Shown here piece by piece: positions 6,291-63,388 of a DNA stretch of 64,000 bases; positions within the stretch are counted from its first letter, which is position 1, and each line of letters starts with the position of its first letter. The position numbers and the translations under genes are program-made. Under the pieces are notes generated by a model, which did no database searches, was not told the origin of the DNA, and saw only the letters and a list, made by a program, of their open reading frames with translations. Origin of the DNA: Klebsormidium nitens (Eukaryota; Plantae; Klebsormidiophyceae); assembly GCA_000708835.1 (NCBI GenBank), contig DF237278.1, positions 37,894-101,893 of the forward strand, given 5' to 3'.

Positions 6291-9200
6291 TCATTTCCGG
6301 GCGATTAATGGCGACCGGTTGGTGCACAGTTCGTGGTCGTGGCAGCCCTGCATCTGCCAGGCCCAGCGCATGTTGGCGATATTCTCCGAGAAGATGGACC
6401 CGTGGCTGCTGATGAACACCGTCGATGACGCGCAGATGAACTTCTCGAGCAGCGCTTGCACCTGCGATCACGAGGGGAGCTTTTACTTCACTGAGTTGAG
6501 TGCTGCTTTTTACGCATTGGAAAATTTGGTCTATGAGCTTTCAGAACAACAGAGATTGTCGATGTTTTCTAAGAATTGGGGGAGATTTGTGTGTGGGACT
6601 TCAGGAGAACGAACAGCTTCAAGGAGGCTTTGGCAGCGCTTCATAACTTGCGGCTGAAAAACAGAGTCGAGTCGAAGCCGGGCAAGCTTGTAGGTCTAAA
6701 AGATGTCGTTCAACTCCGATGCAGGAAATTGAGGCAGGCTGAATAAAGATCCAGTATTTGCAACTCCAGAACGGAAAGCAACGAAATCCAGGCGCAAAAA
6801 CGCAGTCAATGGAAGCAGGTTAGACGTGAAACTAGAGGCTGAGTTCGTGATCCGCCAACAAACTGCTGCGAATCAAGAAGTGGGCCTCTACTATTACAGA
6901 TCGCGAAACGGCCAGTCCTTGGCCCAACGATACGGTTTGCCCCACGAAACTGGTCAATGAACTGTTCAGCAAATCGTGATGAAGGTGGACCCCCGCTGCA
7001 AACCCGCTCCCAAACCCACCTGGTTAGTGGTCGGTAAGGACTTGGCCCAGCGGTACTGGCCCCAATCGTCCATCCCCGGGAGGCGCACCGTCTGGATGCC
7101 AGCCATCGCCAGGAGTGACGTCAGCTGCTCCATCTCGGAACTGGGCGCGTTGGTCGCCATGAAAAGGGTGCGGATGCCACTACCGCGCAGCCCCGCGATG
7201 AGGCACTCGGCGACCTGGGGGATCGGGATGGTGACGTAGCGCTCGTCGGGGGAGGTGTTGATGCGTGTGCTGGGGGAAAGGAAGAAAACAACTTTGAGAA
7301 ACTTTCATGAGCTGTTTGGAAATCCAGCAAAGGAAAGTGACTTGGCGAGTTGAAGATGCGCGGGGTGCAGGTGTGGAGGAAAAGAAAGCTGAGCGACACT
7401 GTGAGACGACCATTTAGAGAAAAGAGCAGAGGCGCGGGTCGGAGTGCTTTTGATGGAAACAAAGGGGTTGCTTGATCGTATTCTTGCAGAGTTCTTGATA
7501 GAAAGCAACCAGGCTCTAGCGCCACGTGCCTTGGGAGAAGTGGGAGGTGGTTATCCGTCTCATCTCGCTTATGCCTGATTTGGACAATGTGAAGAATGTT
7601 CGCAAATTAGTATAAATTTCCCTGCTGCCAGGCCACTTTCGCTTGGTCTTTCCTTCAAAATTGGGTCCTCGGAGCGTATCAGGGAGCAAAGACTGAAGGC
7701 AGGAGAACGCAACTAGACTCATGCAGAAACAACAAAAGCTGGCTTCAGGATTGAGGACCTCCAATGAAACTAGAGGCAAGCCGAATTTTAGAATTGAAGT
7801 ACCAAGGACGTTTTGGCTCCTCACAATTTGCTCTGGTCCCCCGTGAGTTTGACGTAGTCCAGGAAATCCCCCCTGCGGAGGTGGACTGCCGCATATTCGC
7901 TCCCCAGCGCTGATAGGATATACTTCTTGGCGGCCAAGCGGATGGTCCCGCTGGGTTGCAGGACCTCGTTCACCAGATTGCACTTGACGCTGGGGTTGTA
8001 TTGCCAGAGAGTGCTAAGGTGGGTTGCTTCTGACACCTGTCAAGAAAAGTACGGTCGTTGTGACACCTGTCAAAGAAGTCCATCGGATGTGGAGTGGGGT
8101 TGAAGTCCTCAAAGCTTGCGGCGTACCGCACAGCTTTCTTCATTGTTTAAGGCTTTTGAGAAAAGCCCTCCAGTGAGTGAGCCAACGAGATCCTAGTCAG
8201 GTGTATGGGCTCAGACAGCTGGTTGACACGCGGGAAGAAACGATTTGGTCAAGTTGCCCGGAAAGAGGAGGCAAAGATCAGAACAAGATGCCTGCCGCCA
8301 ACTGGGGCAGCTGTTATGGAAGCGCCAGAAGAGATTTCTGTGCATTTGTTGGTGCCGCTTAGGAACCTTGATAGAGAAACTGGCGATATAGTAAACAGCA
8401 CTGGCACAATTGGATCAAAAAACTGACAAGACTCAGCGGATCTTATTTGAAATAACGGGAGTTTCTGGTCAAGTTTGGTTTTTTTTGGCTTGACAAGAAG
8501 TTGCTCAGGTAGGCAGAAGCCAGAGAGGGCTTATAGGACAATCGATGCATGCACCTCTGGAAAGCTATGCTCGGCCGATTTCACATGTAAGGGAGATGGG
8601 TAGCATGGGGTGCGACCGCATTAGAGCATCGCTGGAAACAAGGGTTATCCTTACCAGTGACACTCAAGATCATGGCTGTCGACCAAAATGCTCTACACTT
8701 GATAAAGATCTTCCAAACCAGTACCACATCACCATACACGATAAATATTTCCAATGCCCAAAGGATGAAAGACCCAACAGCGCAAACTTCTTGCTCCGTA
8801 GGAAACTGCATCCTTAACATGTACCAAAGAGGCAAGCGAGAAAGCTTCATTGTCTGCAGCGTTGCCACGCAGCTCAACAGCTTTATGCAAAGCAGGCTAG
8901 CGCATTGACACTAGCTTGCAAGAACCAGTCGCAACATGTCTTGGAGAGCATGTGTTCAAACACTTAGGGAGGCTCATCTGCTCAGCGTCAGCTGCTTCTT
9001 GCATCAAAACTGCTTCAAACAGAGATGGAAGCCGTTCAAATGAGCCCTTCTGCACACTCACCCACAGGACGTCCGCAGAGAAGTTGAGCGCAGTCTGGAC
9101 GTCTGTGACGTCACTCCCCAGCACGTCGATCGCACCAAACTCTGCATGCAGCATATCCTTTCCCAGCTGCATTCCCCCCACACACCGCTGCTTCTCGTCA

Positions 9201-9924
9201 ATGTGGTACACACACAAACCCTGGACCGTTAACCCTTGGTTAACCTGCTGGAAGTCTGCCCACGACAAGCTCTGCGCTTCCCCCGTGCAATAGTTGGCCA
9301 GCCTCAAATCCAACACGTCGGCGGGGTCTAGATCCACCTGCACATTGTCCCCCCCGCTGCTCTCCTCCAGCTGCGTCCACGGCGCAATGACGAGCGTTCT
9401 CTTGAGCGCGACCGCAAGGTTCATGCTCTTTTGAAGACACACCATCCGGTTTGAGAACCCCCCAATGTGGCACCCCGCAATCAGGTACTTGTTCTCCGCA
9501 GCTTCCCAGGGGACGTTCCCCTCCAACATTCCCAGCTTCCTCTGCTGACAGGGGGCCCCCTCCTCCCAACTGATGAGCGATGCAGTCCCGGCTTGGGAAA
9601 GCGGGGCCCCCGCGGGACTCGCCGCCCGTTTCAGGTCCCGCATCTCCTGCCGCAGCGAGACGACCGTCTCGTTCAGCGCATCCTTCAGCTCCTGGACCCC
9701 CCCCCCGGAAGTGGGGGCCCTGCTTGGAAAGCTGTCCTCGGCGCGCTCGANNNNNNNNNNNNNNNNNNNNCGTACCAGCATCGTGAGGACCCAGCACGAA
9801 GACCGATGGAAAGGTCGCGCACGCTGAACGGCAGGCGGAACCCTGTTGTCTGCATGGCCTGGTGTTGGTGCGAGTACGGACTGCCCCCCTGTTTTTGGGC
9901 GCTTGCTCGGGGCGGCGAGTGCAT
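6291..9924 (-). CDS. O-fucosyltransferase family protein (PF10250; plant At5g50420/At1g17270-like, POFUT2-like fold)
   Basis: Exons about 9924(start uncertain, N gap at 9751-9770)-9062, 8036-7825, 7269-7020 and 6461-6291, all GT-AG with compatible phases. Motifs: WEAAENKYLIAGCHIGGFSNRMVCLQKSMNLAVALKRTLVI, YAAVHLRRGDF, TIPIPQVAECL, LFMATNA, QALLEKFICASSTVFISSHGSIFSENIANMR. These parallel the plant family motifs I recall (ICLSGQMSNHLICLEK, LHLRRHGF, YPIPQAADC, AMLDKTICAMSSVFIGASGSTFTEDI). Confidence 0.9.
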
Positions 9925-12286
9925 GCCTTTTGAGCTCAGGGACAGCTTTTCTCGCAGCAGACTTTCTGCCCTGCTGCTTTTTGTGGTGACTGTGGGAGAA
10001 GTGCAACCAGGGGAAAAGAGCTCTGATGCAGGGAGAGAGCTGCGCTGACTTGCGGGCGGCTGTTTGGAGCTCAGCTGAGGCTCTGAGCTGGAGGGAGGGC
10101 GACCACTCTAGTTTCTGGAGCAGGCTTGGTTCTTCCAGAGACGCACTGGAGCTCCAAGATTGCGGGGAAGATAAGGGCTGCTAGCATGTCGCACCTCAAA
10201 AACCAAGGGAGCTGAGTGGAGCTAATACAGACTGAGCTGAGAGACTAGGAAGTGCACGTGCTCAAGTGGCTGTCACTGCAAAGGGCTTTCTCTGCGGGCG
10301 AGCTACCTGGTTCTCTCTGCTTTCTTGTCAAAGTGCTCTAAGGTCGGCGAAGTCAGTACCAAACTGGGAAAGACGGAAAGATTCTGCTGGAGGACGGTAA
10401 GATTTGTCCTGTCCGTCCGATGGTCGTCATGGTCACTGACAGCTGTGCGGAGATAGCAGCCGACGCCCTACTTGGTACTGCTCCTCGCTGAGTCTTGTTC
10501 GCTTCCAAAGCTTTAGGGGACGCACCTTTCAGCTGTACTCCACCATTCACACTATGTAGCATCCGTCATTTAGTTGCAGCATGTACAGACTAGGTGTACC
10601 GGTAGGTAGTATACGTACGGATGCTGCTTATTGTTATGTGACATCTTACCGTACATATTACCGCGTTTTTGCAGCTCTGTACACCTGTGCTGGTCGCTGC
10701 GCGAGCCTAGAGAGGTGAGCTAGGTAGTGAGGCTGCAGGCATCTTGACGTCAAGCGAGGAATGTCTGTACCTGTTCATTGTCAGGACTCTGTTCCTGTTT
10801 CTGCATAATGGCCTCCCAGGCTCTTTCAATGACATAGGTAATCGCTCCAGCAAGGTGGAACGTCGCTCTTGCTGCTGTCAGGTCAGTATGCCGTAGACGT
10901 TGCGAGTGCGGGCACCTTCGAAGTTTGGCGCACTCTTGAGTAGGGTATTGCCAGTTTGCCTGTTCACATTGCACAGTGCGCAGTGCACACCCTATCTAAA
11001 GGGTGTACTGATGTGTGCTACGGAGACCCGATCGACCTCACAAGCCGAAGGTAGCTCGAGGGTCTTCAGTCGACAAGTGGCGAGCCGCCACGTGTACAAG
11101 GGTTCTTGTTTGCAATAATTGCTTGTCGGTGTCTAGAGTACTGACGTCAAGAGCGCTCAAATCAAGCGAAAGTAAGTGCGCCGGTCTGCAGACGGTGTCG
11201 GTCTGTACACACAGTCGACAGCCAAAGTACTGAAATTTAGAGCGGAACTGCCTGCTAGGTACACTGAGACAAAGTTGAGTTCAAATGTACCCGATAGAGC
11301 GGCACCTGAAGGCCGACTCCGAGTCCCAGTTGAGAGGACTACGGTACCTAGCTAGGTACCGGCATACCGTAGCTGGTAACAGTCCAAGTGAAGTCATAGC
11401 GGTCGGGTTGCGCAATGTGGAAGCCCTAGACCGATCCCGCTTGTGCAGTATGCTCCTCATGAGGATGGTCTGTACCGGTACTACCTAGATATTACCCACC
11501 TAGATTTCCTGACGGTGTGCACATGCTTCCTGTTGGCTCACTGCTAGCTAGCTGCCAGTCGCAGCCACCTGATACAAAGTATCATACTTAGTATACTTAC
11601 CTAGTATGAGGTGGGAAAGGCACCCTTCCCGTTTTCACCCCCTTGGCACCGCGAGCCACCTGTGCCTGTAAAGTGCCAGTATTAGGGGAAAGAAAGGGGG
11701 GGAATTTAAAGCCTTTTGAACGGTTTGGAACTCTGCGGTATAGGTACCCTAGCAGCCAGCAGAGACTGCCTCCCCACTAGCTACTCAGTAAAGCACGTTG
11801 CTTATCATCAGCCCTCTTAGCAGCTGTACAATCTAGAGCGACCCGTGCTTGACAAGCTGTGTACGTAAGCTGGCGTCAGCTGCCCATGACGCTACAATAT
11901 TTTGGCGCAGCCTCAGCGTATGTCAGCAATGGGGCGCTGTTCCTCGCACCAACGACAGTACCTACGTTCGCTCTCATCCACTTCGTCTTCGCCCACAGCT
12001 CAAGAAAAGAAAAAGATAGACTCCCAGCCACACTCTACAAGAACGCAGAGTCCGCAAGTGGAGGAAGAAGCAGGAAAGGAGGCCGCCCCCTACGTCGGAT
12101 TGACTCTCCAGCTTCCCACTCGAGCTCCCCTCTGCGCTTCCTTCTTCTCAGCTAAGAGTACTGAGCTCCCCTTGCCAGCAGCTGGCCCCCTCCTTGTCAG
12201 CAACTACCCACTCCGTGTTAGCCACCCCCCTCCTTGTCAGCACCCTCGTACTAGACTTGTAGAAGGAAAGTCTGTAGGTAGGGAAG

Positions 12287-15200
12287 ATGGTAGCAGCAAT
12301 GACTGCACGAGTCCCGGTGTCCCTGCTCCTAGTCACCGCGCTGCTTATCTTCTCGCAACCGGTGCAAGGATACCGGCGCGGGCTGAGCACCTCGGGCGGG
12401 CTCCTTGTGCATAGCACGGACCGACAGCTGTTGCAGGAGGGGTCCGACAACCCTTGTGGGCAGTTTCCCGCGGATGATCCGTTTGACGGCGTGCGGATCG
12501 GGCAGCAAACCCCAAACTGGCACGAGCCGTGCCGGGACAGTTCCGGGGTCGTTCAGTTTTGCTGGTGAGGGTTTGGGGCTTTCACTGGTCTGTGGTGAGC
12601 TCGGTTTCATGTTCTGAGGATTGGCACAATCTAGGTTGGAAGTGGGTTCTTCTCGTCTGTGGGTATGGTTATCAACTACTGGTGAGCATGGAACATGAGG
12701 GAGTTTATTGTGACTTCCTTTGGGACTCCTTGATCGTGAGCTGAGGCCTTTCCGGTTGCGTAACATTATGTGTTGGATCCCTGGAAAGGTCAGTGCAGCT
12801 TTAAAACCTTTGAGGATAACTTTCGAGGCAACACTGGACCCGCAATAAAGTTCAGCACAAGGAACAATATTCCCCTCTCAACCTGGCTGGTGGGCTTTGA
12901 AAGCTTGGCTCTGCCTATGGACTCATCTGTGTTTGAGAGTTGTCGAGTTGGCAAAGCATAAAGCTTTTGCGGGTGCCATTTTGGATGCAGCACATTTTGG
13001 GCTGGGGAGTTTCTCAACCTTTTGAGATGGTGGCTAGAAAACTTTGCAGAGCTCAATCAGAACGATATACTTATGCTGATCAGGCAAAGTGACCTCAGTG
13101 TCGAAGGCTAGTAAGTCTGGTCACATCTTTGGTAGGAATGTTTTCCAAAGACCAGACAACACGAAACCTCAAGAGAAGTTTGAAAGGGAAAGCCCAGAAT
13201 GTCTGTGTCATTTGAATGTGGACATGTGAGTAAGAGTAAGACAAGCCTGAGGGCTCTGAGACGTGTGAAGCTTTTGTAGCAAAATCAAGCTTGGTTGAGA
13301 GAAAACCCACTACTGTTATCAGGAGGAAAGAGAGAGCTGGATAGCGATTGTGGAACCATCAGAATCTGCATTCTGCTTAGAAGCTGCCAATCACCCCTCA
13401 CACTGACCTCAGAGACCAGCTCCTGTTGAATAATGTAGGGCCTTTGAATGGATTCCTTTAATCGAGCTGCTATACTCATTCCTATCCTCAGCATTCATAT
13501 GGTTTTACGGTGAAAAGCAAGCCCAATGTCCTGAAGGCCTTGTGTTTGCATGTGCAGTTCAGCGGGCTCCACGCAATGTGCCTGCCCACCAAACCCTCCC
13601 ACAGCAGCAGGGCCTTTTGGGTGCTACAATTACGTGAGTGCCCTCCGTCGTGTCAGCTTTCTACATTTTTGATCAATACTCCCCAGGGCCTTGCTGACAA
13701 GATTCTAGAGCCTTTACTGCAATCTGTGTGCATGTCATCATGAGCACAGATGAGCACAGACGAAGCACTGATGAGTAACTGAACAAGAAACCTTGCTACA
13801 GGACAAATCCAGGTTAGTGATCACATCGCAAAGGAACGGCACTACCAAAGCAGGTTTTGAGACACGACACGTTTGGTTAAGCGCAATTTTCATCCGATCC
13901 AGTATGTAATATGACAATCCGGACCTCTGGGAGCATGATAGCCAGAGCTATTGAAGTACCAGGCCCGGAGAGAGTGTTAGTAATATACCAATCTGGCAAG
14001 CGAAAACGGTTCCATCACCAATTTGTTTTCTCCATGGCTTCTTCTCCAGACCGATTATCCTTTGATAACCTCGAAAAGCTCTAGTCGGTACGTTTTGACG
14101 CTTCAGAAAGTGCATGGCACGGTGTGCGAGATGGACGGACTGGTTAACTATCGAGCCTGAATTTGTTATGCGTACACCAAACCATCGGCCTCTTTAATTC
14201 GGACGTTGGACTCAACATGCCGCGACCCTCTATGTTTCAATAGACTTAAGACCATTGCCGCCTGCCAAACATTCCCCTTAACTCTCGTCTTGCTTTTGTC
14301 GCCAGGATTGTGACCGCAACTTACTAATCCCCTTTATCTCTCCCTCTTGTGGCTTCGCGCGGCGCATTTGTACGCTTCCCACCTTCTCCCAAGTCCCAAG
14401 CCGTTTATGTCGATTCCCTTGACTTTCTCTCTTCCGAAACCCAAGCCTGACATCTTCCGCCGTTCCTTTCAGGTTGACAGCAACACTCTAAACTTCAACA
14501 CAGGCCAGCAGTGCGGGTTCACCCTCCCCAGCTCTCCTGCGACTCCAAGCCCCACCTCTACGACTCCGTCCCCGACCTCTGCAACTCCCTCCCCGACCTC
14601 TGCGACCCCCTCCCCAACTTCGACAACTCCCTCTCCAACTAGCACCCCCTCTGCGACTTCCTCTCCAACTTCCGCTCCAACAAACCCCCCCGGTGGACCG
14701 TGCACCACGGCCCCGAGGGGATCCCCCGGGTCCGACGGCACGTGCGGGTTTGACCCCGCCGGCCAGGGGTACAACCTGTGTACGACGATGGCTGGGGTGG
14801 GTCTCCGCTAACGACTTTTTTGCGGTTCGTGCTTAGGATTGAGTCCCCCTTTCCACCGGAAGCCTTTTGATGCATCACGTAGGTGAACGCTCTGCACGGT
14901 GTTTTACTTTTCTGGGGCGTGTGTCGATCGTTCTTCAATTGCTGTGTACGAAAGGATAGCTCTCTGCATGACGAACCGGCGTATGCGCTTCTTCGGTGAG
15001 CTTTTCTTTGGCGAAGACAGACCCCCTACATTCAATTTCCTCTGCTTAGACGTGGTTCCTTTCCAATATAACGTCTGTTTGCATATGTGCAAAAGTTGTC
15101 TTGCCCTTGATCATCATATTCCTCTGTTTTGAAGCTAAAAGGAAGTCCTCGCGCTGGAAGGAGTTCGTGCTGCTGAAATCATTGCGTCCTCTGAAGCTCG

Positions 15201-16790
15201 CGGCCACCCGATCGTTCGCTGAACCGTAACATGATACTGCCGATTACGACACGAGCGCGTTAGGTCCGGCCGGCTACGTCTCTGAACGAATTCTTTGCCC
15301 AAAACTTTGTGTTTCTTGTGATTGCTTCCATTTCCCGGATGTTCAATTCCTTTCATAGGACGCTTACTTGTGGTCGGATCTCTCTTGGATCGTTTCTCCC
15401 TGATACCTCTTCATCAATTCCACGTCGAAGCTCTCAATCAAGTCGACAATAAAGACCGAAGTCATCAGCCAAGCTTGCTAGCAATTTCGTGGAATTCGTG
15501 GGCTTCAACTTTGCAACCAAGATCCAAGTCGCTAACCCAAGCCGCGTCTTTCCGCTGTTCCACAGATCCAATTCTGCCGCCAAACTGGCTACGCTGGCCC
15601 CACGGCGGAGGCCTTAACAAGCTTCCAATCTGCTAACCCACAGCGTCAACCCCAGCCGTCTTTCCGCTGTTTCGCAGATCGCGTTCTGCTGCGAAACCGG
15701 CTACACCTGCCCGACGGCGGACCCGGTCACGGCCTCCAACCCGAGCTTCGCTCTCCAGGTCTACTGCCAAGCGCTGGGGCCCTGCGCAGACACCCCGACT
15801 TCCTCCCCCACAAACGCCCCCACAACAAACCCCCCCACAACGAACGCCCCCGCAACGAACGCCCCCACAACCAACGCCCCCACAACCAACGCCCCGACGA
15901 CTTCCGCCCCAAATACTCCCGGCCCTACCCCCGTCGCAACCACCCCCTCCCCCGCCCCCACTTCTGGCCCCCCCAGCGGGTGCCAGACGGTGCCCTCTTC
16001 CGGATCTCCCGGCGTGGACGGAACCTGCGGATACGACCCGTCCGGTCAGGCGTTCAACGTGTGCTCAACGGCGGGAGGGGTAAGTGCTTCATCCTGACGG
16101 CTCTGATCAACTTAAGTCTTTTGCTAAACTCTGGTTGAGTTCTCAGTTCAGTCTAGAGGTATTTGGCGCAAGATAGACGCCCGGGAGACGGACGGAACCA
16201 GTGGGTGCCATTAGGGTAGGGGTCGTCAAGATTTCAGGTCAGTCAAAGAGGTCAAAACGTCTGCAAAACGTCTGCTAAGTGAGATGAGACTATGAGCCTT
16301 TCCACCATGTACTCCCTTCCTCTACCGAGAGCAGTATATTCGCTCAGGTCATATTTCTGGTGGCTAGTAGCTTTGTAGCAATATGAAGCGCATTTTCAAC
16401 CCGTGGAAGTGCTGGACGATCGAGCTTGCGTGCCCGAATGGAGTCGGCGATTGCGACATCAAATGCTTTCACAAGGAGTAACAAAGATTCAACCCTGAGT
16501 CAGGTTGTGACGTTGACTGTGACCGTTCTAAAGACTGCGACCAATCCTGCGCTCTTTTTGAACCCTCGGATTTCAATAATTAGATAGACTACATATCTGG
16601 GCACTTTCTTTTCAGCTCCCGCAGTCTTTCCCTGAACAAGAGTCATCTTAACCCGGTTCCTTGTATTCTTCAGATCCAGTTCTGCTGCCCACAAGGCTAC
16701 ATTTGCCCGATCGCCGGGTCCGTCGCACCGTCCGGTGGCTCCAACGCTCTGCAAGTATTCTGCCAAGTGGCCGGGCCGTGCGGATACTAA
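12287..16790 (+). CDS. Secreted modular protein: signal peptide, Cys-rich modules and Pro/Thr/Ser-rich (mucin/HRGP-like) linkers
   Basis: Exon 1 12287-12564 has a signal peptide (MVAAMTARVPVSLLLVTALLIFSQPVQG). Small exons are likely near 12.8-13.1 kb (uncertain) and at 13558-13633 (SAGSTQCACPPNPPTAAGPFGCYNY). Clear exons at 14473-14796, 15678-16079 and 16674-16790 (TAA). Two copies of a module C..P..GSPG.DGTCG.DP.GQ..N.C.T..G|I.FCC..GY.CP.A...ALQV.CQ..GPC. Confidence 0.8.
14536..14690 (+). repeat. Coding tandem repeat (TPSPTS[A/T])n, about 21-bp unit
   Basis: The exon translates ATPSPTSTTPSPTSATPSPTSATPSPTSTTPSPTSTPSATSSPTSAPT. Confidence 0.9.
15805..15910 (+). repeat. Coding tandem repeat (NAPTT)n, 15-bp unit
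   Basis: AACGCCCCCACAACC-type units translate TNAPTTNPPTTNAPATNAPTTNAPTTNAPTTSAP. Confidence 0.9.
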
Positions 16791-29892: not shown

Positions 29893-30706
29893 TGTGTTTC
29901 CGCGATGAGGAGGAACACTGAGCTGAACAGTGGTACGCGGCTCCTTGGCAGCTGGAGTGGGAGCTGGAGGAGGGCGGGGGGCGCGGGTTGCTGCCGAACG
30001 GCGATGTAAGAATCTGAGAGTAATCTTGGCAACGTGACTCTGTGCCAAGGAAGACTTTACTCGCAGATGCTTGAACCTTTGACAGGACTGAAATAGGGCA
30101 AATCTTCGAATGAGTGTGGCTTTCCGAGCCTCAATGTCAGCCGTCCCTGTAAGTCACTGTTAACCACGCTGCTTTGTGGCAGGCCACGCTTGGTGTTCTG
30201 CGCGCAGTTTTTTCAAACTTCGCACGGCGATTTTGTCAGAGCACGTTGGCGCTGTGTGCTCAAAAGCTGGATGTCCATCAAGTCTAGCTAGGTACTACCT
30301 ACTAGATTCAGTGGCCTGATTCCTGACATTCGGCTGGGGGTACGTTGGTGAGGAGTCGAAGTAGCTCGTACAAGTTCCTGAAGTGTTACTGGAGTGCACC
30401 GTGCAGGTGGGGTACGGCGCATCAAGACTTGTGTAATGAAGCAACCGCGCCGTCGGCGGAACATCGTCATGCCGGTCGCCTCTCAATATTCAAGCCATCA
30501 GTATGGAAGAAACCACTTTATTGCCGTCTTCTAAATCCGAAGACGGTAGACAAGAGTCGGTAAAGTCCATCCCCCCCCGGCCGAGGCCCGGGGATAGGTA
30601 TTAGCAGGAGGTACGGAGGCGTCGACTCAGGACTGCATCAAGCTTGTACGGAATTTTAACGAAGTACGGTAGTAAGTACCTCTACCCCTGAGAAACAAAT
30701 TTTATA

Positions 30707-30903
30707 CCGGCAACTCTCGTGTGACCTAACGGGAGTGTGACCTATTAAAGCTACGAGCTACCCGGGCACTTCAAGCTAAAAACCTAACCCGAATAATCAC
30801 CCGCTCCGCACCCCAACCCACCCTAACTACCATACCAACCCCACCCGTCCCCCGGGTGCCTATCTTAGGTCACACGGCTCTGAGGTCACAGGAGAGTTAT
30901 CGG
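30707..30903. mobile_element. MITE-like element, copy 1 (~195 bp, ~40-bp imperfect TIRs)
   Basis: CCGGCAACTCTCGTGTGACCTAACGGGAGTGTGACCTA ... TTAGGTCACACGGCTCTGAGGTCACAGGAGAGTTATCGG, with a non-coding C/A-rich core. Confidence 0.7.
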
Positions 30904-49778: not shown

Positions 49779-52700
49779 ATGGCTCTCTTGAGCCCCCACA
49801 ATCCTGAAAAAGGGAAACTCCCAGGACTCGCATTACTCACCGTCTTTGCTGTCGGTCTCCTCATGGGCGCCGTCATCAGCCACACAACATTCCCACGTGA
49901 CGTTCGGAGCGTCACGCTGACGTCACCTTCGGGCTTGCTCACTTTGCAACAAACGTCCAGTGCCGCTTTGCGCCGCCCTCTTGTTGACCCACCGTTAGTC
50001 TGCCCTCCCTGCAATTCCACTGTGTGCGCCTTGTGTCAGCCGCGCCTGCCGTGCAATTGCGTCGGGCTCAAAGTCAGCACGTGCATGAGCCGAGACCCGG
50101 CTCTGATGGAGGTTCCCGGAGCGTACGGCAAAAGGCTTGGGCTTCCTGCGGCGGAACGCGTCAATGGGCTGTTGATTGAAGAACTTTTACCAAAGTGAGC
50201 ACGCTTTCTTTTACGTGGAAAGAACCTCAGACTTACGCTCCGTGTCTCATTCTTGTGCGCCACGAGCGTTCATCGGCCAGAATTGCGCCAGTCTCCCAAG
50301 GAGCTGAGAATCCGCTTTTATACACAGCAAAAGTTCTGCAATCAACTGTGTCTACAGATTCCGAGCGGCTGCTGTTTACCTCATTACATTGGTGGCAGCT
50401 CTGCTCTGAGGCCGCATCTAATTCTGAATGTTTGGATTCATTGCTCCTCTTTTTGGAATTCTTTTGCCGTCGGATTAGCTGCGCAAGATTTCAGCTTTTT
50501 GATCTGCCCCACCCTGGTAAACCTATAATTAGCCAACGGTCCGTGTGTTCAGGTGCAGGTCTTGCAATTGATGACCTGCATTGAACATGGTTTCTTATCC
50601 ATAAGTGGCCCCAGTTATCGTGCGTGGCCAATGTAGTAGCACGGAAGGAAGAAAGAAGAACGTCACAAGTAAAGTTGACTGCTTACCTGTTACAAAAGTC
50701 TTCTATTTGGTCTTTGCAGGCTTCAGTTTCGCCCCGAATACTCATACGGGCAGATTCATGGTGAGCGATGCGATCGGAGCTCCAGTTCATTCTGTTGTGT
50801 TTGAGGCATCTGCTCAATTATTTTTCTTCTGGTGTGAGGACGTTGGACGAAGCTCAAGTGTCTCAAAATGTAGCTGGGCGAGGGTTTTGGCTGGATCAAG
50901 AGGGTAAAAGTTGTAATCGTATCTCAACACCGCACGCTGCAACAAAACTCCGGATAGAGAGGGCAGCTGTGCCACACCCCTTGACGTGCATACTAGGCTT
51001 GCAAAGTTTGAGCTGCCGCTGTAGTAAAAATCAACGGAATCGCTGAAGCTTCGGATCTTACAGGCCTCTTATCACGAAAAGCGTGGTTCTTTGCAAGTCT
51101 ACTGTAATTCAAAGAGCTGAAACCAGAAACTTCCCACTCGTGTCCAGATGTCGAAGGCCTTGGTCACATCGTTCCTTGGCTATTGGGCAATCAAGTCGAC
51201 CTGAACTCGGCTCGCAGGTTAGGAAGCCCGAAGCCCCTTTGCTGCTGTTCTTCTGTAAAGTAAAGATTAGAATTTCATCGTTCTTTGTTTGCTGATACGG
51301 GCCTTCCGACATTGCCAGTGGGGTGCAGGAGATTTAAAGTGGCGCGTAAATCGTCAGAAGCGTGTGCATTCTGAAATCGGGAACGAGCTCAGTAGTCCAA
51401 CTAGTTGCTGAAATGGAGTTCAGAGGTCTTTTGATAAGCCGTACGCTGTTAAGTCTTTCCGCTAGAAAACAGAGCAACATTCCAAATGGTAATTCGGACC
51501 TCAGAGAGATCAACATGAACGCAAACAAAGTTGGTATTACTGCAAGAGGGAACTGTCCTAAGCCTCGAACAGTCTGCTGAGCAGACGACGCCTGCTGAGC
51601 GGTGGCGTGTCTACTGATAAAACCTTTATCTGCCTGGTCATTACTCTTTAAGGCGGACTGGAGCCCTTCTGATGCAGACCTCCTAGACTCGATCGAGCTT
51701 TTCTCCACCCGTCTGATCTGTGGGAATAGACCCCGTGATCCAAGTAAGACAGTTTGCGAAAACAAGAGGCCTAACCTGGTTATCACGAGATTGCATGAAA
51801 AGTCCCTTCTTCTGCGGACCCTAATTTAGCTAGATTTTGCAGGCGCGTTTTCATGGACTTGGGCGCCAACCGTTTCGAAACGAGCACGGCGTGGTTCATG
51901 CGGACGTACCCCGTTGAGTTCGATGAGGTGGGTGCTCCGACACCTGGCATGTAACTCGACCAATCATAAAATTGACTTGAGACCGCTCCGTCAAGAGAAG
52001 TTCCCTTTTGAAGAGGATGTGCGCCAATATTTAGCCCGTTTTGAAGTCAAATCTGACTGAAGAGTCCCCTTTTCCAGCGCTGCCGGTACTGAAAAGTGGT
52101 CTAGAAAACGGGTCCTGATTCGTACTTTTGCCAGCGTGCTTCACGATAGTTTGGGATACAAAAGCTCCGGGCTAGCAGATCAGGTTGATCAATGATCAGA
52201 TCCTTCTAGGGGCGTATCCTTTGTCTAGAGTGAGGGGGGTAATCTTCGATGCCTTTTCTTAGCCGTTGCTAAAAGTTGGCATTTGAGTACGGAACTCATC
52301 GACCACTTGGACTTGCAGTTTGAGGGAAAGAGTCTCGAAAGTACGGTCCTGCCTTGCTTCTTTGCGTTTTGACCGTATCTCCACTTGCCTGAATCGGAGG
52401 CGCTTTGAATATATCTCGGCAGTGACATTTGGGATACTAATACAGAACCTGCGTCTGCACTAACTGGATTCTGCGTGAGGATGCCCGCTTTTCTTCAGAC
52501 CAAGTTGGAATTTAAGTACCACAAATACGCTGTTGTGTGAAAGGTTTGATCTCAGCCTTGTTTTTACGGGTCTTCAATCAGGCTGTCACGGGTTACTTGG
52601 AGTGGCATGCTAATGTGGGCTGTTTACGGGTTTCGTGTGCGTCCGAAGTCTTTTGGCAGTCGACGTGCACCTGTTTTCATGACACTCATACCGGAAGATC

Positions 52701-54167
52701 TCCTTGAAACCTCGTATCCAACTCGTCTCCGCTGCCCTGATGCTGAAGTCTCTGAAGTTCGCTCCAGAGCACGAACGTGTCCCACATAATATCCAAGCAC
52801 CCGTTTCCATCCACTCCAGATCCACGCCTTCGAGATGACCACCGTCTTTATTCCGCCGATCGAGAAGCTCGCGCGCCTTCCCAACCCGCCCAACATAACC
52901 GCATACCGCGCGTTAGTGGGCATTCGAGATCTGCCGCCATCCGCTTCCGGAGTGCCTGGCATCGACATTCTGCGTTTCATCAAGAACGATCTGCGGATCA
53001 AAGAAGAGGATACGTTCATCCTGAAGATGGACATCGAGGGGGCGGAGGTGGGTCAATGGACTTTAAACAGGAATTTTTGGCCGTTAACCAGGGATGCTTA
53101 TGGGCTGGTTACAAAGTAACCTGAAGTCCAAGAATCAGGCTTGGGCGGCACCCTGCCTTGTAGCGAGGTTAAATACCGGTTAATTGGCCAGTGATCTGAG
53201 CCTCCAGTATGGTGATCAGCCTGGTCGGCAGCCAAAACCCCCTGATAGCTCGAGCAACATGCTGGACATTGGCAGTTGCAAGAGCGTGTTTCTCGGAGAG
53301 AGGCTCTTGGAAGCACCGGTAAAGCTGAAATACCTCTACCAAAAAGATGGGGTTCAGGTATGATGTTTGCGTGAAGAGGGACATTGATGCAGACGTCGCT
53401 TGAGGCAGTTTGAAAAAGCTCCTCGATAAGCCTTGAACTCGGACGCCACATGCGCACGTCCATGAGTCCGTCAGGTCTGGTCTTAGAGAACGTTTGAATC
53501 AGGTTCTCACCCTTGCCTTCATCCGGACTCAAGTACTTACGGGGCTCAGGAGGCTTTAAAGCACGTAGCTCTCCGACTCTCTAATGGTAGTCCTGTCTCG
53601 ATAGGTCCAGGAAGACACCTCCGCATTTGATGATGTACGAAGATAAGAGATTCTGACATCTTTCTCGCCATTCGCGCCCATGTAACCAGGGCCCTAATTC
53701 TGTTAAATTCCATCAATCTTATCCCCGGCCCCGGCAAGCAACTTCTCCTTCCCAGTCGGGCATTTCACGATTCTCGCCGTCGTGGAAAGACAACTCAATC
53801 TGCTGAACTTCCTCGTATTGAACGTTTCTTTTCTCCTTTCTTTGAACTTTCTTCTATTACTTCCTTTGAACTTTCAATTTCTACTCTCTTTAAACTTTCT
53901 TTCTCCACTCTCGTTAAACTTTCTTTTTCTACTTTCTTCAAACTATTTTGCCCCTTGCCTCTATTGCAGTGGGACGTGCTGCCGCTCCTTCTCCGTGACT
54001 CCGAAGCGCTCGCGCTCATTGACGAGCTGTTCGTCGAGGTGCACTACGGAGACCCGGCCTTGGCCCAATGCGGCTGGAATGAGTACTACCCCCGGACGAT
54101 AGATGATGCGGTGGAGCTGGTCCGTAACCTACGCAAGGCCGGCTTGCGGACGCATTTGTGGCCGTAG
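49779..54167 (+). CDS. FkbM-family (Methyltransf_21) SAM-dependent methyltransferase, type II membrane protein
   Basis: Exons 49779-50194, 51843-51927, 52820-53047 and 53970-54167, phase-consistent. TM segment LALLTVFAVGLLMGAVIS. Motifs: RVFMDLGANRFETSTAWF, IHAFE, FILKMDIEGAE|WDVL, LIDELFVEVHY. Confidence 0.88.
53795..53950 (+). repeat. Pyrimidine-rich ~24-bp degenerate tandem repeat just upstream of a 3' splice site
   Basis: About six units of (T)TGAACTTTCTT(C)T...CT(C/T)T lie before the acceptor at 53968-53969. Confidence 0.65.
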
Positions 54168-55266: not shown

Positions 55267-58200
55267 TCACTCAGCAATGTTGAACGATATATGCCCGGCC
55301 CGGAGGCGACCCATGAGCGTCTTCCTAAGCTCGTCGATCAGCCTGTTCCAATTTGATCCGAGCGCGCCTACGAAGTAGTCCGCTTCCGCGCTTAGCATCA
55401 GATTCACGAAAGCGTGGTCCACATTTTGCCGAGCGTCAGGGATGCGGTCCGCGCCAAAGATCCGGGAGGTGTTGGTGTAAAGGAACTCCCACGCGGGGTA
55501 ACGACGCGTGTCATCGACCACGCTCTGCATCTCCGTGCTGAGCCAAATGGTCCTGCGGAAACAATAAAACATGGTTACAGGAAAGTTTGGCTCCCAACCA
55601 AGCTGATGACCAGACTCGAATTCTTGTTTATGGACAGGTAAACCCGCCTTGGAACAAGGCGGGTTACTGCGCGAGTCTGGTTGTTGGACAAATAGTCACC
55701 TTCTCTAAGAGCCCAGACCCGTCCATCATGATCAAGGGCCGATATCTCGTGCTGTGTGCTGAGGAAGTATTACTTGGTTATTCCACTTCCTTGCTTGCAT
55801 GGCAAGAGAACCCCTTTGGGAGCTGGCGAGTGGGCAGTTGCTGAAGAAGATCGTGAAAACGACCGTTCTCCTACTGGCATGCTTTCTCCTTACAGAAACC
55901 GGCCTCACTAACCGAGAGAACCTGACACAAACACAATAATTCCCGCTTTTTCTTAGCCGTTTTTTCTGCTCTGGTGGTTGCTGGCGAGCGGATCACTGGC
56001 GATCTACGAACTTCGTCAAGACCGTCTCAATACAGCGAATGATTGTGCTGCCTCATACTTGCGTAACGAGAGTGCTATCTGTGCGACATGAATCAAAAGT
56101 CGTAGCTGCGCCTTCATGTGACATGGGGCAACGGTTTAGATGCGCCTTCACAAAAGGACTTCAATCGACTCACTTGACGCTCGGGTCGTGCCGCCGAATG
56201 CGCTCCGCCTGCGCCATGTAACTCCCGAAGTCGAACAGCCGCATCTCGATCCCTTTGTCCCCTTGTCTCACGTGGATAGACAACATAGGACGGGGGAAAT
56301 AAGGCGCAAGACCGGAGCCCGAACTCCATAGCGTATGCTCCAGCTCTCCGACCATCAGATTCTTGTTGAATTCGTCCTCGGTGGAGACTTGAAGCTGCCT
56401 CTGCTTCGCTTCAAGGACTTCCCTGGCCACCTGGAACGAGAGCGGGGGGGAAAACAAAGTCAAAGATGCATCGCGGCTTCAGTTGGAACGTTGAGGGCAC
56501 AACTCGACTCGGCGCTTAAGATCGGACGTCAAAATTCTGATTACGCGCGCGCTTACCCTCATCGCTACTCTTAAATGCAAACATCTCGAAACACTTGCGG
56601 CGGCTGCCAAATTGTTTCTGCTGCTCCAAGAAAAGTCAATAGGGTAAGTTTGCCATCAGGGCTTCAACGGCAATCGCAGAAGGCGTTGTCAAGCGCAAAG
56701 CCTTTTCAGTAAGGGAAAAAGGGCGCGCTTCAGTTTCCTCGTTTACACATAAGCTCTCCCGGGATCCTACAGACTTCTCAGCGAAACGAAGCTGCCTCAA
56801 CAGATCCTTCCTACGCGCTGGCCGACCCAGAGTCCTCACCTTCCTTCCGTAGTTCCGGTTCCGCTCGTGGTTGCACAGCGAACACAGGTACTGGGTGGGG
56901 AACCGGAGCAGGTAGCTGGTCGCCTGCGCGCGCCACCAGCGCATCCTGTTGGTCGACTCGCCCCCGTCGAAAAGCTTCCCCGCCACTTCCTCCGTCGTGG
57001 TTGGGTCCGAGATCCAGGGTTGGCCCCAAGGGCCGTCAGGCACCTATGATCGAAAATTTCTCGTTTAGAGTAACAGTAAGCGTCGAGACTTCGATTTAGA
57101 AGTAGTTGGTGTCGGGTTGAGAGAATTAACCTGGGACGGGTGGGTTTCTTCTGTGATTTTTGGTGGGTACCGCTGCGGAGCAGGAGATTTTCGATGGTTA
57201 GGATTTCGACTTCAGGTTGGGGGCTTTATACGATCTCCGCAGCTTTCTGTACCTAGATTGGAGATCTCTTTTCGTCGCCGAAGGGGGGCCGCTTGAGGGG
57301 AAAATCTGCTCGAGGCTGGAATTCACTGCGCAGGCTTGCTTGCGAGATCGAATGAAGCGAAGGGTTTTGGCGGAGAGCCAAAAGGATCGAGAAGCGCTGA
57401 TGCACAAAAGAAACGAGACAGACTTGCTTGGCACGAGAGAATTGGCCATGTAAGAGAAGCCCAAGAAATCGGATACTACACCAGCATTTCAGCGTCGCGA
57501 GTGCTCTTATCACAAAGTGAGCTGTGCAGGCGATTGCCATTTCTCCTCGAATGGTACGAAACGCTTGCCCTATAAAAGATCACGAAGGGGAAAAGCCAAA
57601 AGTCTCGTTTATCAACAACAAGCTCTAAGAAGAAAAAGCTCATTCTACCGGGCAAAGACGAACTGAAACCCATAACCCAGACAATTACGCGCTCCGCACC
57701 CTACCCCACCCTAAACACCAGGGCAACCTCACACGTTCCTCAGCCATTTTCACGCAGCTTAGTTTGCTAGTTGAGACTTCGAGTCCGGCTCACCAGATCC
57801 CAGAAGGCGGTGGCCTGCTCCAAGTTGTGCCCGTAATGCAACACGCGCTCTGTGCTGTTCCTCAGAACGGCGTCGATCTCAGCTCTGGAATTGAGGTTGT
57901 GATGGATCGGCTGACCGATCCCGGCACGGTTCTGCTCGTTGAGAAGCTCCAGCGCCACTTGTCTGCACAAAACAGGTTTACAGTTGGTCAAATAAGCAAG
58001 GACCCCAGGCCGCGATAATAGCGGGGACGGGTGGGGTTACATAGCGGGTTAGTGTGAACACGGTGCGTGCTTGGACCTTCGGGTTCACGGAATCGGTTTG
58101 CCCGACCCCATCACAGTGTTTTTGAAAGTCAGAGTTGCCAATTTTAGGATACTAGCGCATCTCGTTACCGACTCGAGGGCTAAGCGCTGATACCGTGAAC

Positions 58201-61200
58201 ACACCACGCCTATCTGACGTCTCAGGCCTGACGTCACAGGCCTTGGATTTTTGAACACCTGACTTGATTGCGCAATCGCAGCCCAAAGTCTGTTTGTGAT
58301 GCCGTGACAATGCAAGACGCTCGAATGTTAGACGACCTCCGATCGAGGATTCCGAGTACGTATCGCTGACTGCCCACACATAAAAAGCAGCACTGATACC
58401 AGTCTCGCAAAAAGGTAAAGTCTGCTGCGTTTCCGACTTCTCAAAGCCCTTGGCTCCAATCAATCATTTACCGAAGGAACGCCGAAGGAACGGACAAACA
58501 ATTGCGTGAGTCGGAACCTCTAGCTTCCAATTCTGGACTTGACGCAAGTTCTACAGCTGTTTCCGAATACAAGGACTCTAACGACGGAGATTGAAGCGGG
58601 TCCTCGACGCCTTGTTTTCTCTGTTAAGCTTGGCCTTTGCTCTTCGAGAGCTCTGATTTAAATGCCTTGGGCCTTCAATCATACGGGCCTTGGAAGTTTA
58701 CTTGCCTACCCAGTCTTTTTAGGGCATGAAGTAGAAGCCAAGAACGAAGGCCTTTTCTTTAGAAGCTTCCTTGCACACTGGATTTTCTGGGGGCATGAAT
58801 TAGCAGCCAAAAACGAAGGCCTTGTTTTCTGGAAGCTTACTTGCACACCGGGTCTTCTGGGGCCATGAAATAGCAGCCCAGGCTGGACTTGCGGCCGAGC
58901 CCAACGCAGCCCTCGTGGTCCGCTCGGGTGAAAGAGTCGGTCATGATGAGAGTCCGGTTGTAGGTCTTGGCCACTGCGAGGAAGACGCTCCAGCCGTGCA
59001 GCTGCGACCCGATGCCGTGGCCGTTGGCGACCCACCAGTTGACGACCAGGAACTTGTGCGCCGGATCGCGGCAGTCCTGCGGGTAACGAAACGAATATCG
59101 GTTGACAGTCTATGAGTGCAACTGCTTGTAAATCACGAGCTCAATCGACTTTCGACTCCCCGCAAATACAAGCCTTTGGGGGTTCACTAAGGCGTTCTGG
59201 ATGAACACACTTCGAGGTACCTGATGAAAAAAGTTCTCCTATTCTGCGCTCCGACCTCTACAGGGGTAGGCTGTCCGTAACTGGGGCTACCGCCCGCAAC
59301 TGAGATGAAAGAAATAGATACTTGCCTCTTGCTACTTGGGTTAGCGCCCAGGTTCGAGTTTGACTCTCTTCTGGGTTTCTTAAAGCTGCTTTTTGGAACG
59401 AGCTCTCCGCGCATCCACACTTCAGTTCGTGACTTTTCATCGAAGAGCGGTGGGACAGCTTCATGAGATCCATGTGATTCTCGGAAGCCGACAAGGGCCC
59501 TGATGCCGGAACGCATTGAACGACCTACGACCTTTGGGAAACCAGAGGCCCTTGAGAAGAGGGACTCTGAGAGGCACTTCGGAGCACTACCTTTCTCTGA
59601 AAACACAAACCGAACGCAATTCGCATGCTCTTTGTCACTCCCATTTCAATCAACAAAGCTTTTGACGTCCCGTTCTTACCTTTCCTACCCTCAGATTAGC
59701 AACGCTACAGCGCATTTGAAATTCTTCCCTGCCAAGACCCTGGATTCAGAACCGTGTCCAAAAGTCTTAACCCGACTTCGGGCCTCACCTTAGGATGCTG
59801 ATGCGCCCAGATTGCTGCCTGCGCCGCCCGCGTTCCCTGGAGATTGTCCAGATCCGCTCCAACCACCCAAGGCGGCTGCGGGCGCGCAGACGTCATTGCA
59901 GCGTCATCGGCGCCACCTGTATACCAAGCCGGCAGTGACCCGTCGGAAGAGCGCTGATCCCAAGTCTTGCGCAGTATCGTCACTGCTTCACAGTCCTGTG
60001 CAAAGAAAAACTTGGTGCTCAGCCAAGGCGAGCTCATCCTGGTCCTCAAATCCGGTTCCCCGAAATCACTCGCCCTAGGACTGTTGTGAGGGAACAGCGG
60101 AAGGCAGTGTTCCGACTGAAATGCACCTGGTGTTCCGTCAGATCATAGGCGAGCCTGCAACAGTCGCGGGTAACTCATTCCGTACGTTTCCTGATCATCG
60201 AACCGACCAGCCGCTCGACAAAAGCACTCCCTTCTGGAAACAGGAAGTATGAGGAAGGCATGTCAGTCAGCCGCAATGAAGCTGCCAGATTTGCCAACGG
60301 TCAAAATGGACTGAACAATGCTGAAGCACCCACAACGAGAGCTTACCTGGAGATGCGGTGCTGGAAGGACTTGTTCAGTTATGCTGCTCCTCTTCGGTAG
60401 ACTGATGTGGGAACTCAGGTTGAACTGCAAGTCCCAATGGCTGACAAGCTGCTCGACCTCCACAGTATCCACACTAGTGAGCTGCGTCTTATCTTCATGC
60501 GCCTCTTTCAACTCGGCTGCAGAAGCTTTTGCTTGCGAGATCGCTTGCTTAAGTTCCTGCACAGAGAGTTTAGTACAACTTTAGGGTCATGAAACTTGAT
60601 GCAAAAGTCCGCTGATAGCTCCAGGCCTGAATTGCCAACCGCTGTCACGTTCCCATGGAATGTACAGCCAGTCGGTTCACTTCTTCTTTCCATCACAAAG
60701 GATGGCTCCTTTCTCAGTTCATGCCTCAGTTCAGAACCAAAGTAGCGCCACAACGTCTTTGACTGACTAGAAGGATGAGAGGACTGAGCCAACTCTGAAG
60801 TTTTGGTGTAAGAGCGTGAGAAGCAAGATCAAGACGCCTTTAAGGTTGACGGTCAGAAGATTACCAGCCTTCTCTGTTTGAATCCGTAAGACTCATTCTG
60901 CACCAGCTATTAATTTGAAAGCCTGCTGGACTCTAAAAGATCGCACTGCACTCTCCAGCTGTCCTGCCAACAACGGACTCCGCACGTAGAAAGGCTGCAT
61001 CTCACCTCCACTTGCTTGCTCCAGATCGCAAATTGACTGTTCAACTGGGAACTTATTGATGCTGTAACCTTCTTTGAGACCAGTTCCGGAAGCAGCTCCT
61101 GTGAGAACGGCCTGGAACCGTCTTGCACAACAGATTCCTACACGAAAGAGGAGCATTTTTAGGCTTATGAGATGCCAGACACCACAAGGAGGGCTAAAAG

Positions 61201-62607
61201 GGTGGACGATAGACGTGCAGATTCTCTTCAAAAGCTCTAGTAAGAGGTAGAGAAAGAGTTCAGGGGCAGACCAGTTGGGCTAACATTCTGCAGGCCTCCT
61301 TACTGTTCCCATGTCCCCAATCAAAGGGTTCCAACAGCAGGTTGTTTCTTCTGTGCTTTTCATGCAATACAGCAGCACTTGATTATGTTACCTTTTCAGA
61401 CTCAGATGAAAGGAAGGCAGCAGCCAAAGAGGATGCTAAAAGGAGTCCCTCATACCTTCTGCCACCATGATAAGTAGCTGCGCCGTTACGGACATCCAAA
61501 CATCACCCTCAGCGATGCGTTGTAACACATTTTAGTCCTTCTGCCGTTTCGATCCAGAACATATGAAAGGGCTTGGGCAAAGCAAGGGGTTCAGGAGGAC
61601 TGCTCTAACCTTCTCTTTGGCTGCCAGAAACCCGCTCAGTTGCTTGTGTATAATCTCTGAAATGTGCTCGGCAGTTCCATCTGGCAGCCGTAGGCTATCG
61701 ACGGGTGGCAGGCCAATCTGATCCTGCGGTTTCTATAGGAAGAACAGGTGTCAATTCATTTTGGTTCTTGAGACAGTGCAACATCTTCAAGTGCTCAACG
61801 AGTCTCAAGATGTGAATTGGAAGGTTGGGGCGAAGGGCAACCCAAAAGAGAGGATTGTATCATTGAGTGGAGCGAGAACTCTGCTTATGTGCTCAAACGT
61901 CAGATGCTAATGCAACAGGAACATTTTGAGTTTTAAGGTGGCACGTTTCCGAAGGTTGATGCGGGTACGTCATAAAGGGTGCCTAGAAGAAGAACTTCAC
62001 ATGTGTGGCTGACTGTGAGAGGTGCTGATACCACAATTTTGTTTTGTCCTACTTGTTCCATAGATGGGTCTGTACGTATGGGCATCCTCTTATCTGCAGA
62101 TTTGATGTTGAAAAGTCTGCCACAATGGGCCCTGGCACCTTACCACCCTGGCTAGTAGTCTATACGAACAAGCATCTGCTTTCAGGTACAGAGACGGAAG
62201 CGCCGGGTCTAGACAAACAAAGCTCCTGCATGCTGAAATGAAGATCCGGTTTGGAAAGTGCACTGATTTCGAATCAAGCAATCCAAAACTCATGAGATCG
62301 AATCACCAACCTTGGGCCCTTGATCACTGTCGACGCCGCTCCACAGCTCCTTCAAGCTACGTGCATTCAGCTGGACATTGTACCTCGCCGCAAGAAAGGA
62401 CGAGGAAAAGGGACTGTCGTTTGATACAGACTGGCTCAAAGGGCCAGGATTAAAGTGCGACAGCTTGCCGGACGAGTGCAGGACAAACAGCACCAACCCA
62501 AAGACTATTATTCCCACCGGCAGCATAACCAGGGTCTGGCGGCTGATGCTTCGCATGGTGACGTCGCCCGCGGCGCCTGACCGGGGAGACGTCACCCTTG
62601 CAACCAT
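55267..62607 (-). CDS. GT23 alpha-(1,6)-fucosyltransferase-like protein (plant At5g28910-like) with a long helical stem
   Basis: Exons 62607-62311, 61732-61610, 61098-61006, 60556-60347, 59995-59789, 59076-58841, 57962-57794, 57043-56840, 56430-56174 and 55552-55267 (the stem exons are less certain). TM segment LVMLPVGIIVFGLVLFVL. Motifs: PAPHLQ|DCE, WAHQHPK|DC, GHGIGSQL, RADHEGC, RWWRAQA.SYLLRF, PRPMLSIHVRQGDK, IWLSTEM, SAEADYFVGALGSNW. Confidence 0.92.
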
Positions 62608-63190: not shown

Positions 63191-63388
63191 ATCCTGATTA
63201 ATCCACACGAGAGTTGTGTACCAGATGGCAGAGTGCCTCCCCGTAACTTTTGGAGCCAGTGGCAGTGGCCACTCCATCCCGTACAGTGCTGGTACCGGTA
63301 ATACTGGTACCAGTAACACTGTGCACCGTACGCTGCATGGCGACTCTCCGGCCCCAGGCCCGGGCCTGCAGATCGAGCGAAAAACATA

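Follow-up and report, generated by a model that had tools for sequence, protein, structure and literature searches.

We show that the last 64 kb of scaffold DF237278.1 of Klebsormidium nitens NIES-2285 (GCA_000708835.1, 101,893 bp; this 64,000-nucleotide stretch is hereafter the window, in which a position equals the record position minus 37,893) contains a physical cluster of seven consecutive genes, six for putative glycan-tailoring enzymes and one for a mucin-like secreted protein. From left to right, the annotated neighbours are an O-fucosyltransferase-like gene (O-FucT), a proline/threonine-rich (P/T-rich) secreted protein, a TylF-type methyltransferase, a GT69/CAP59-type glycosyltransferase, a PC-esterase-like protein (PCE-like), a DUF7870/FkbM-like methyltransferase and a GT23-like protein (Table 1). 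The public annotation places exactly these seven genes in the window and nothing between them, matching the seven consecutive genes of an original prediction made from the DNA letters, and their strands alternate strictly (- + - + - + -), an order with a chance probability of 1 in 64. Three complete head-to-head pairs result (O-FucT/P-T-rich, TylF/GT69 and PCE-like/FkbM-like), and the GT23-like gene, facing the scaffold end, forms the fourth half-pair. Where a gene cluster is operationally defined by at least three contiguous non-homologous genes of pathway type, this locus has seven consecutive genes with six enzyme families. Gene content, topology, transcription, pairing, the sharing of promoter words and the repeated adjacency of the same families are direct observations. 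Our preferred reading, which we hold with about even confidence, is that six type-II anchored, Golgi-type tailoring enzymes and the mucin-like protein, encoded in promoter-sharing head-to-head pairs, serve one glycan.

All seven genes have GT..AG introns, and at least five are represented in RNA contigs from several independent studies. The earlier description is borne out in that glycan enzymes of the secretory pathway are encoded here by a series of unrelated genes with introns, beside a mucin-like secreted protein. Hydropathy (Kyte-Doolittle 19-residue maxima of 1.6-2.8) recovers the five visible N-terminal hydrophobic anchors that had been described, together with one signal peptide. The family labels fared less evenly in profile searches: PF10250, TylF and GT69 were upheld, but FkbM was recovered through DUF7870 only, and the PC-esterase and GT23 labels passed no Pfam threshold. 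The 706-aa GT23-like and 555-aa PCE-like products (aa, amino acids) were judged from their exons, precomputed matches and a paralogue. Strict divergent pairing, common promoter words, a lectin domain in the GT69 enzyme and a paralogous GT23/PCE pair are features beyond that earlier description.

Table 1 Genes, assembly gap and promoter regions of the window. ORF, open reading frame; SAM, S-adenosylmethionine; MITE, miniature inverted-repeat transposable element.
Feature	Position	Strand	Basis or content
O-FucT (PF10250) gene	6291-10543	-	RNA contig joints, GT..AG introns; annotated 6291-9750+, partial at gap
Assembly gap	9751-9770		Inside O-FucT exon 1; bridged by RNA contigs of three runs
Promoter region O-FucT/P-T-rich	9925-12286		TACCGGTA at 10597, 11473; GTAC-rich; transcript ends near 10543, 11971
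P/T/S-rich secreted protein, 428 aa	12287-17651	+	Annotated gene; exon ORFs; signal-peptide-like N-terminus
TylF/MycF-type SAM O-methyltransferase KFL_003290100, 376 aa, 6 exons, N-terminal anchor	25594-29892	-	PF05711
Promoter region TylF/GT69	29893-32825		TACCGGTA at 31529, 31853; four ACCTACC; two MITE-like copies
GT69/CAP59-type glycosyltransferase, 909 aa, membrane anchor, C-terminal bulb-type lectin	32826-42684	+	PF11735, annotated model
NXPE-like/PC-esterase-like protein, 555 aa	44954-47887	-	Annotated gene; two exons mapped with paralogue P0003
Promoter region PCE-like/FkbM-like	47888-49778		TACCGGTA at 49128; GTAC-rich
DUF7870/FkbM-like SAM methyltransferase P0012, 345 aa, membrane anchor	49779-54167	+	DUF7870 profile
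GT23-like (FUT8/NodZ-like) fucosyltransferase-superfamily protein, 706 aa, anchor and coiled-coil stem	55267-62607	-	Annotated gene
Upstream region of GT23-like, to scaffold end	62608-64000		TACCGGTA at 63184, 63293, 63387; MITE-like copy

The regions from which the paired genes diverge share short sequence words. With 0.24 occurrences expected, the palindrome TACCGGTA is found eight times in the window, in every case inside one of the four divergent regions, whose combined length is 13% of the window (binomial p ~9e-8). The same regions hold 11 of the 13 occurrences of ACCTACC in the window, 15 of the 22 of GGTACC and 85 of the 232 of GTAC; few of these words occur in the tail-to-tail spacers, the 8-kb gene-free stretch or the left 6.3 kb. 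Beyond the cluster, 1-kb blocks dense in GTAC precede homologues at other loci as well. A MITE-like element of ~200 bp with ~37-bp terminal inverted repeats is present at 30704-30906, 31528-31725 and 63386-63464, in each case within a promoter region, its third copy being interrupted by a second assembly gap (63398-63417). We considered whether the four promoters are copies of one sequence and rejected this, since the element is common to two of them only and the remaining resemblance consists of short words.

Members of the same families stand side by side at two further loci. On K. nitens DF237436.1, a 674-aa GT23-like paralogue is arranged head-to-head with a PCE-like gene (P0003), followed by an ABC transporter. 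In a close relative (Logan contig, SRR23617307), the head-to-head partner of a TylF gene whose exons are 80-93% identical to those of the window (tblastx) is a PCE-like gene sharing 74% identity with that of the window, an arrangement that would be the expected product of an inversion of the GT69-PCE segment between two divergent promoters. Linkage is recurrent within Klebsormidium but need not be old.

Assignment of the two methyltransferases differs in strength. The TylF label is secure: the exon at 26365-26793 scores 117.3 bits with PF05711 against a cut-off of 23 (E = 9.1e-34), the whole protein (P0009, a 100% match to the window) carries PF05711 and PF13578, and 97 of its 100 nearest Atlas clusters have the TylF family set. 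Judging from characterised bacterial members only, the enzyme would methylate a hydroxyl of a sugar, namely a 6-deoxyhexose. The second methyltransferase had been called FkbM. Its product passes the DUF7870 profile (29.9 bits, cut-off 27) and is FkbM-like, but it falls below the cut-off of PF05050 (Methyltransf_21; 17.4 bits against 22.7, E = 0.0049). Its best source-named matches come from the streptophyte alga Closterium, and among four homologues scanned from that alga, two (P0018 and P0021) clear the PF05050 cut-off and two (P0019 and P0020) narrowly miss it. By these profile scores, the protein seems best filed as DUF7870, FkbM-like.

The GT69/CAP59 label held firmly, with PF11735 matched on three exons (59.9, 44.2 and 23.9 bits, cut-off 28.8) that together span profile positions 16-242 of 242, and the annotated 909-aa product also carries a recorded PF11735 match. 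In addition, exon 41004-41378 encodes a bulb-type (monocot mannose-binding) lectin domain. The ORF containing it (40962-41507) was considered as an eighth gene and ruled out: RNA joints at 40313>41004 and 41378>42217 make it a GT69 exon, the contig runs on upstream into an exon ending near 39400, and no such separate product is recorded. The lectin scored 24 bits with PF01453, under the cut-off of 32.4; against PDB sequences (phmmer) it matched pyocin L1 (3.4e-9), putidacin L1 (2e-8) and GNA-type agglutinins (~5e-5). Pyocin L1 and putidacin L1, lectin-like bacteriocins of Pseudomonas, bind lipopolysaccharide that contains D-rhamnose. That these two are the nearest solved relatives of the domain hints that it may recognise deoxyhexoses. 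A jacalin-like insert in the same enzyme was also considered and is unsupported: ORF 35146-35622 (+) within the gene span, one ORF in 34565-37782, gave no Pfam match at E <= 0.1 and no PDB sequence match at E <= 1.

We also observed that introns of the GT69 and TylF genes contain degenerate tandem copies ("echoes") of the beginning of the exon that follows (36560-37783, 38159-38600, 26774-26857 and 27452-27520). For example, four versions of the stretch SRRFD..LL.DGYLCAEDI lie upstream of the true GT69 exon 37499-37783, and TylF residues 228-249 and 243-270 match intronic copies at 64-70% identity.

The O-FucT gene is interrupted by the first assembly gap. RNA places its exons at ~10543-9059 (containing the gap), 8033-7825, 7269-7017 and 6458-6291; the spliced reading equals P0006 ("O-fucosyltransferase family protein, partial"), which is 100% identical to the window exons and matches PF10250, a family of GT65/GT68/GT106 type, with 44.3 bits (cut-off 31.5, E = 2.3e-11). 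A phmmer search of the exons against PDB gave no useful match. Relatives with PF10250 in plants include rhamnosyltransferases, and the enzyme may use GDP-fucose or another donor. Between 9750 and 9803, contigs of the three RNA runs read 101 letters, as against 52 in the assembly; these additional 49 nt shift the reading frame by +1, on account of which the annotated protein is partial. The open frame is ORF 8900-10180 downstream of the gap and ORF 9688-10107 upstream of it, and a DNA contig shows one-letter drops at 9792 and 9802 relative to the assembly. In the corrected upstream frame, a methionine at 9924, the likely start codon, is followed by ~40 polar residues (a cytosolic tail) and by a hydrophobic run that enters the gap. 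The suggestion that the sixth anchor is masked by the gap thus gains support from the RNA and DNA contigs: the ~35 codons hidden there most likely carry the membrane anchor of O-FucT, in a reading where the placement of 30 loose letters is assumed and the frame closes under that assumption only.

The PCE-like and GT23-like labels are weak as far as profiles and models go. In the PCE-like protein, a membrane anchor is followed by a coiled coil, a beta-rich domain and an SGNH-like domain with a GDS motif and a C-terminal His. No Pfam family, PF13839 and NXPE4_C (PF24536) included, matched either exon or the paralogue P0003 (KFL_004870030, DF237436.1, L002:10001-12617; 59-67% identical to the window protein), and phmmer of the exons against PDB found no useful match. 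In the Atlas, P0003 has NXPE4_C neighbours by language-model features (score 0.90), and its predicted structure (predicted template-modelling score, pTM, 0.69) aligns with NXPE at a template-modelling (TM) score of 0.60, followed by PC-esterase (0.51), CASD1 (0.50) and TBL36 (0.48). The GDS motif is present in five of six homologues (the window copy and four others), and a C-terminal His is present; P0003 reads GDC, and with Cys for the presumed catalytic Ser it may be inactive or use a thioester mechanism. O-acetylation of glycans has been proven for NXPE1, whose proposed Ser/His mechanism resembles that of XOAT1, a xylan acetyltransferase of plants (PMC12216134; 10.64898/2026.05.20.726592). 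The proposal of an O-acetylating enzyme at this locus therefore gains support from the NXPE likeness, by features and predicted structure, although the PC-esterase label itself fails in Pfam, and the window protein is a candidate glycan O-acetyltransferase.

As to the GT23-like protein, the exons scanned gave no Pfam match, the last exon had no PDB match (phmmer), and the FUT8_N_cat (PF19745) match on record is marked "faint". Atlas neighbours of the last exon carry FUT8_N_cat, O-FucT, NodZ (PF05830) or XG_FTase (0.84-0.90), the top matches being unnamed. Of the fucosyltransferase-superfamily motifs (HxRxGDK, an acidic middle motif and a C-terminal S..R motif), reading by eye gave motif-like stretches in exons 56173-56478 and 55270-55695, of HVRxGDK type and with a C-terminal SN..RL.

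The seventh product, the P/T-rich protein, consists of repeated Cys-rich modules alternating with Thr/Pro stalks and is a candidate glycan carrier. It matched no Pfam family above threshold, a sub-threshold granulin-like match being the sole one. The Cys module (12287-16790) reads FCC..GY.CP ... LQV.CQ..GPC ... GSPG.DGTCG.DP.GQ..N.C.

Taken together, the circumstantial evidence makes it a reasonable hypothesis, plausible but unproven, that one pathway produces a fucosylated, methylated and acetylated glycan; the common pathway, the identity of the sugar, the acceptor and co-regulation are what we infer. Specifically, deoxyhexose and hexose would be added to a secreted glycoprotein or a wall heteroglycan by both members of the fucosyltransferase superfamily together with GT69 and its lectin domain, and the P/T-rich neighbour could be one acceptor. 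The TylF and DUF7870/FkbM-like enzymes would then O-methylate the added sugars, and the NXPE-like esterase-fold enzyme would O-acetylate them. The lectin domain may keep GT69 on substrate that is already glycosylated, and promoters rich in GTAC, TACCGGTA and ACCTACC may provide joint regulation.

The genes could alternatively be neighbours without a common pathway, gathered by local gene birth and rearrangement in a region rich in expanded secretory families, with generic promoter words and with each enzyme serving a glycan of its own; we regard this as a tenable possibility to which a minority of our confidence goes. Several observations lean that way and weigh against a single-glycan cluster. 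Two of the eight TACCGGTA sites belong to the MITE-like repeat. GTAC-rich 1-kb blocks lie upstream of the homologues at loci L001, L002, L006, L007/L008 and L010, which covers all homologues inspected, stand-alone genes included, except the FkbM-like gene on L012, and TACCGGTA is present in several promoters of homologues at other loci; this fits a general promoter feature, and the words, which were compared with tail-to-tail and gene-free controls, may be generic to the K. nitens genome. Paralogues of the PF10250 and GT23-like genes exist elsewhere in the genome. In a more distant relative (JGI 3300060284/85), homologues of PCE, TylF, O-FucT and FkbM are dispersed over four contigs with no cluster-family neighbour in the available flanks, and the Closterium FkbM-like gene likewise has none in its available flanks, so that the synteny expected in related algae was found in the TylF/PCE-like pair of the close relative but not in these two. 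Against an unrelated neighbourhood stand the adjacency of the same families at the two further loci, in different pairings, and the occurrence of six enzyme families in seven consecutive genes, which chance would very rarely produce: an order-of-magnitude estimate, from an assumed 3% enzyme share and ~17,000 genes (PMC6566377), gives ~1e-4 runs per genome with six such genes among seven neighbours.

The glycan loci of bacteria and giant viruses also contain genes for TylF, FkbM, NodZ/FUT8-like proteins and glycosyltransferases, and the cluster could be a domesticated foreign island, taken up as a block from such a source, that gained introns and anchors later. The Atlas neighbours of TylF are mostly bacterial or viral with scattered eukaryotes, and clusters from Nucleocytoviricota and Uroviricota are among the relatives of the GT23-like exon. 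Nevertheless, we consider this origin improbable, given that guanine-plus-cytosine content is even over the window (0.49-0.57), the introns and transcripts described above extend over the cluster, the window has no viral hallmark gene, paralogues exist elsewhere in the genome and homologues in other streptophyte algae, and the best source-named matches of P0012 are those from Closterium. A foreign origin would not, in any case, exclude the single-glycan reading, with which it is compatible. That the cluster is an artefact of assembly or annotation, such as a scaffold mis-joined at its gaps, is largely refuted, and we give it scarcely any credence. The two gaps of undetermined letters and the scaffold end at 64000 could arouse such suspicion, but the first gap is bridged by RNA contigs, with both flanks covered by DNA contigs, and the second falls within one of the MITE-like copies, past the end of the gene series; moreover, DNA runs contain 92-98% of the words of the TylF region, and the gene models agree with the RNA joints.

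We further looked at the parts of the window outside the annotated genes. An unannotated gene between 17.7 and 25.5 kb was rejected, because RNA runs contain only 12-15% of the words of this stretch and its ORFs have no Pfam match; the low RNA content better fits untranslated ends than a gene. To the left, no gene is annotated from 3.7 kb before the window start to 6291. If the strands continued to alternate, a plus-strand gene missing from the annotation might lie in 1-6290, where the one ORF scanned, 4488-4991 (-), gave no Pfam match. A GTAC-rich block with a TACCGGTA site was noticed at L003:21000-23000, 1.2-3.2 kb left of the window start, in a region whose annotation is gene-free for 10 kb.

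The wall chemistry of the genus fits the proposed deoxyhexose-tailoring cluster. Xylan with side-chains of rhamnose has been found in wall fractions of Klebsormidium, as have fucose and probable O-methyl or deoxy sugars (PMC11688530), and 3-O-methylrhamnose was reported in Klebsormidium by Popper (2004), going by the citation in PMC7612518; the rhamnosyl- and methyltransferases for this sugar have been listed as unknown (10.1101/2025.03.14.643249). A bolder version of our reading, which taken as a whole we think unlikely, is that of a promoter-sharing mix-and-match cluster, equivalent in a eukaryote to the surface-glycan loci of bacteria, which would build a methylated and acetylated deoxyhexose epitope (e.g., 3-O-methylrhamnose) on the mucin-like protein or on rhamnoxylan. 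TylF would then be the long-sought sugar O-methyltransferase, and partners would be reshuffled between species by inversions with breakpoints in look-alike bidirectional promoters. Independently of this bolder version, if the seven genes do cooperate, they form a compact, testable candidate set for the unusual wall sugars of early-diverging relatives of land plants, and divergent pairs with common palindromic promoter words would offer a simple model of operon-free eukaryotic co-regulation.

Our literature search found no gene cluster for a wall or extracellular-matrix glycan of streptophytes and, in the library searched, no paper mentioning these K. nitens genes. Bacteria routinely cluster their genes for extracellular glycans, and a few fungi have been proven to do so. 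A close eukaryotic parallel is the five-gene galactosaminogalactan cluster of Aspergillus (PMC8224951, PMC7229062), which likewise joins non-homologous genes for one extracellular glycan and includes an acyl-modifying step. It differs in being fungal, genetically proven and conserved across genera, whereas the common pathway here is a proposal; it also draws on other enzyme families, without methyltransferases or a carrier protein, and strict divergent pairing is unreported for it. Clusters of plant specialised metabolism similarly consist of co-located non-homologous genes in plant-lineage genomes, but they make small molecules with cytosolic or endoplasmic-reticulum enzymes.

At the level of single enzymes, the PCE-like protein has the same predicted two-part build as the animal sialic-acid O-acetyltransferases NXPE1 and CASD1, a beta-rich N-terminal domain and an esterase-fold domain, and its GDS Ser and C-terminal His resemble the proposed Ser/His pair of NXPE1. 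In contrast to them, it has no Pfam match (NXPE4_C included), a type-II anchor is present along with a coiled coil, and its paralogue P0003 has Cys for Ser. No green alga is known to make sialic acid, so its substrate must differ from that of NXPE1 and CASD1.

In rhizobia, Nod factors receive an acetyl group through nolL, a methyl group through noeI and fucose through nodZ (PMC4881576). The trio of PCE-like, FkbM-like and GT23-like genes mirrors this set of an acetyltransferase, a fucosyl methyltransferase and a GT23-type fucosyltransferase, although the rhizobial genes belong to bacterial operons and have a lipo-chitooligosaccharide as their target. The SGNH fold is not that of NolL, and NoeI is presumably a member of the FkbM family. 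More broadly, bacterial capsule and O-antigen loci, together with the actinomycete TylF/NovP systems, co-locate glycosyltransferases, O-methyltransferases and O-acetyltransferases as this locus appears to do, and the TylF family methylates 6-deoxysugars. The K. nitens genes, in contrast, are monocistronic, intron-rich and membrane-anchored, and any regulation that they share would act via bidirectional promoters, not operons.

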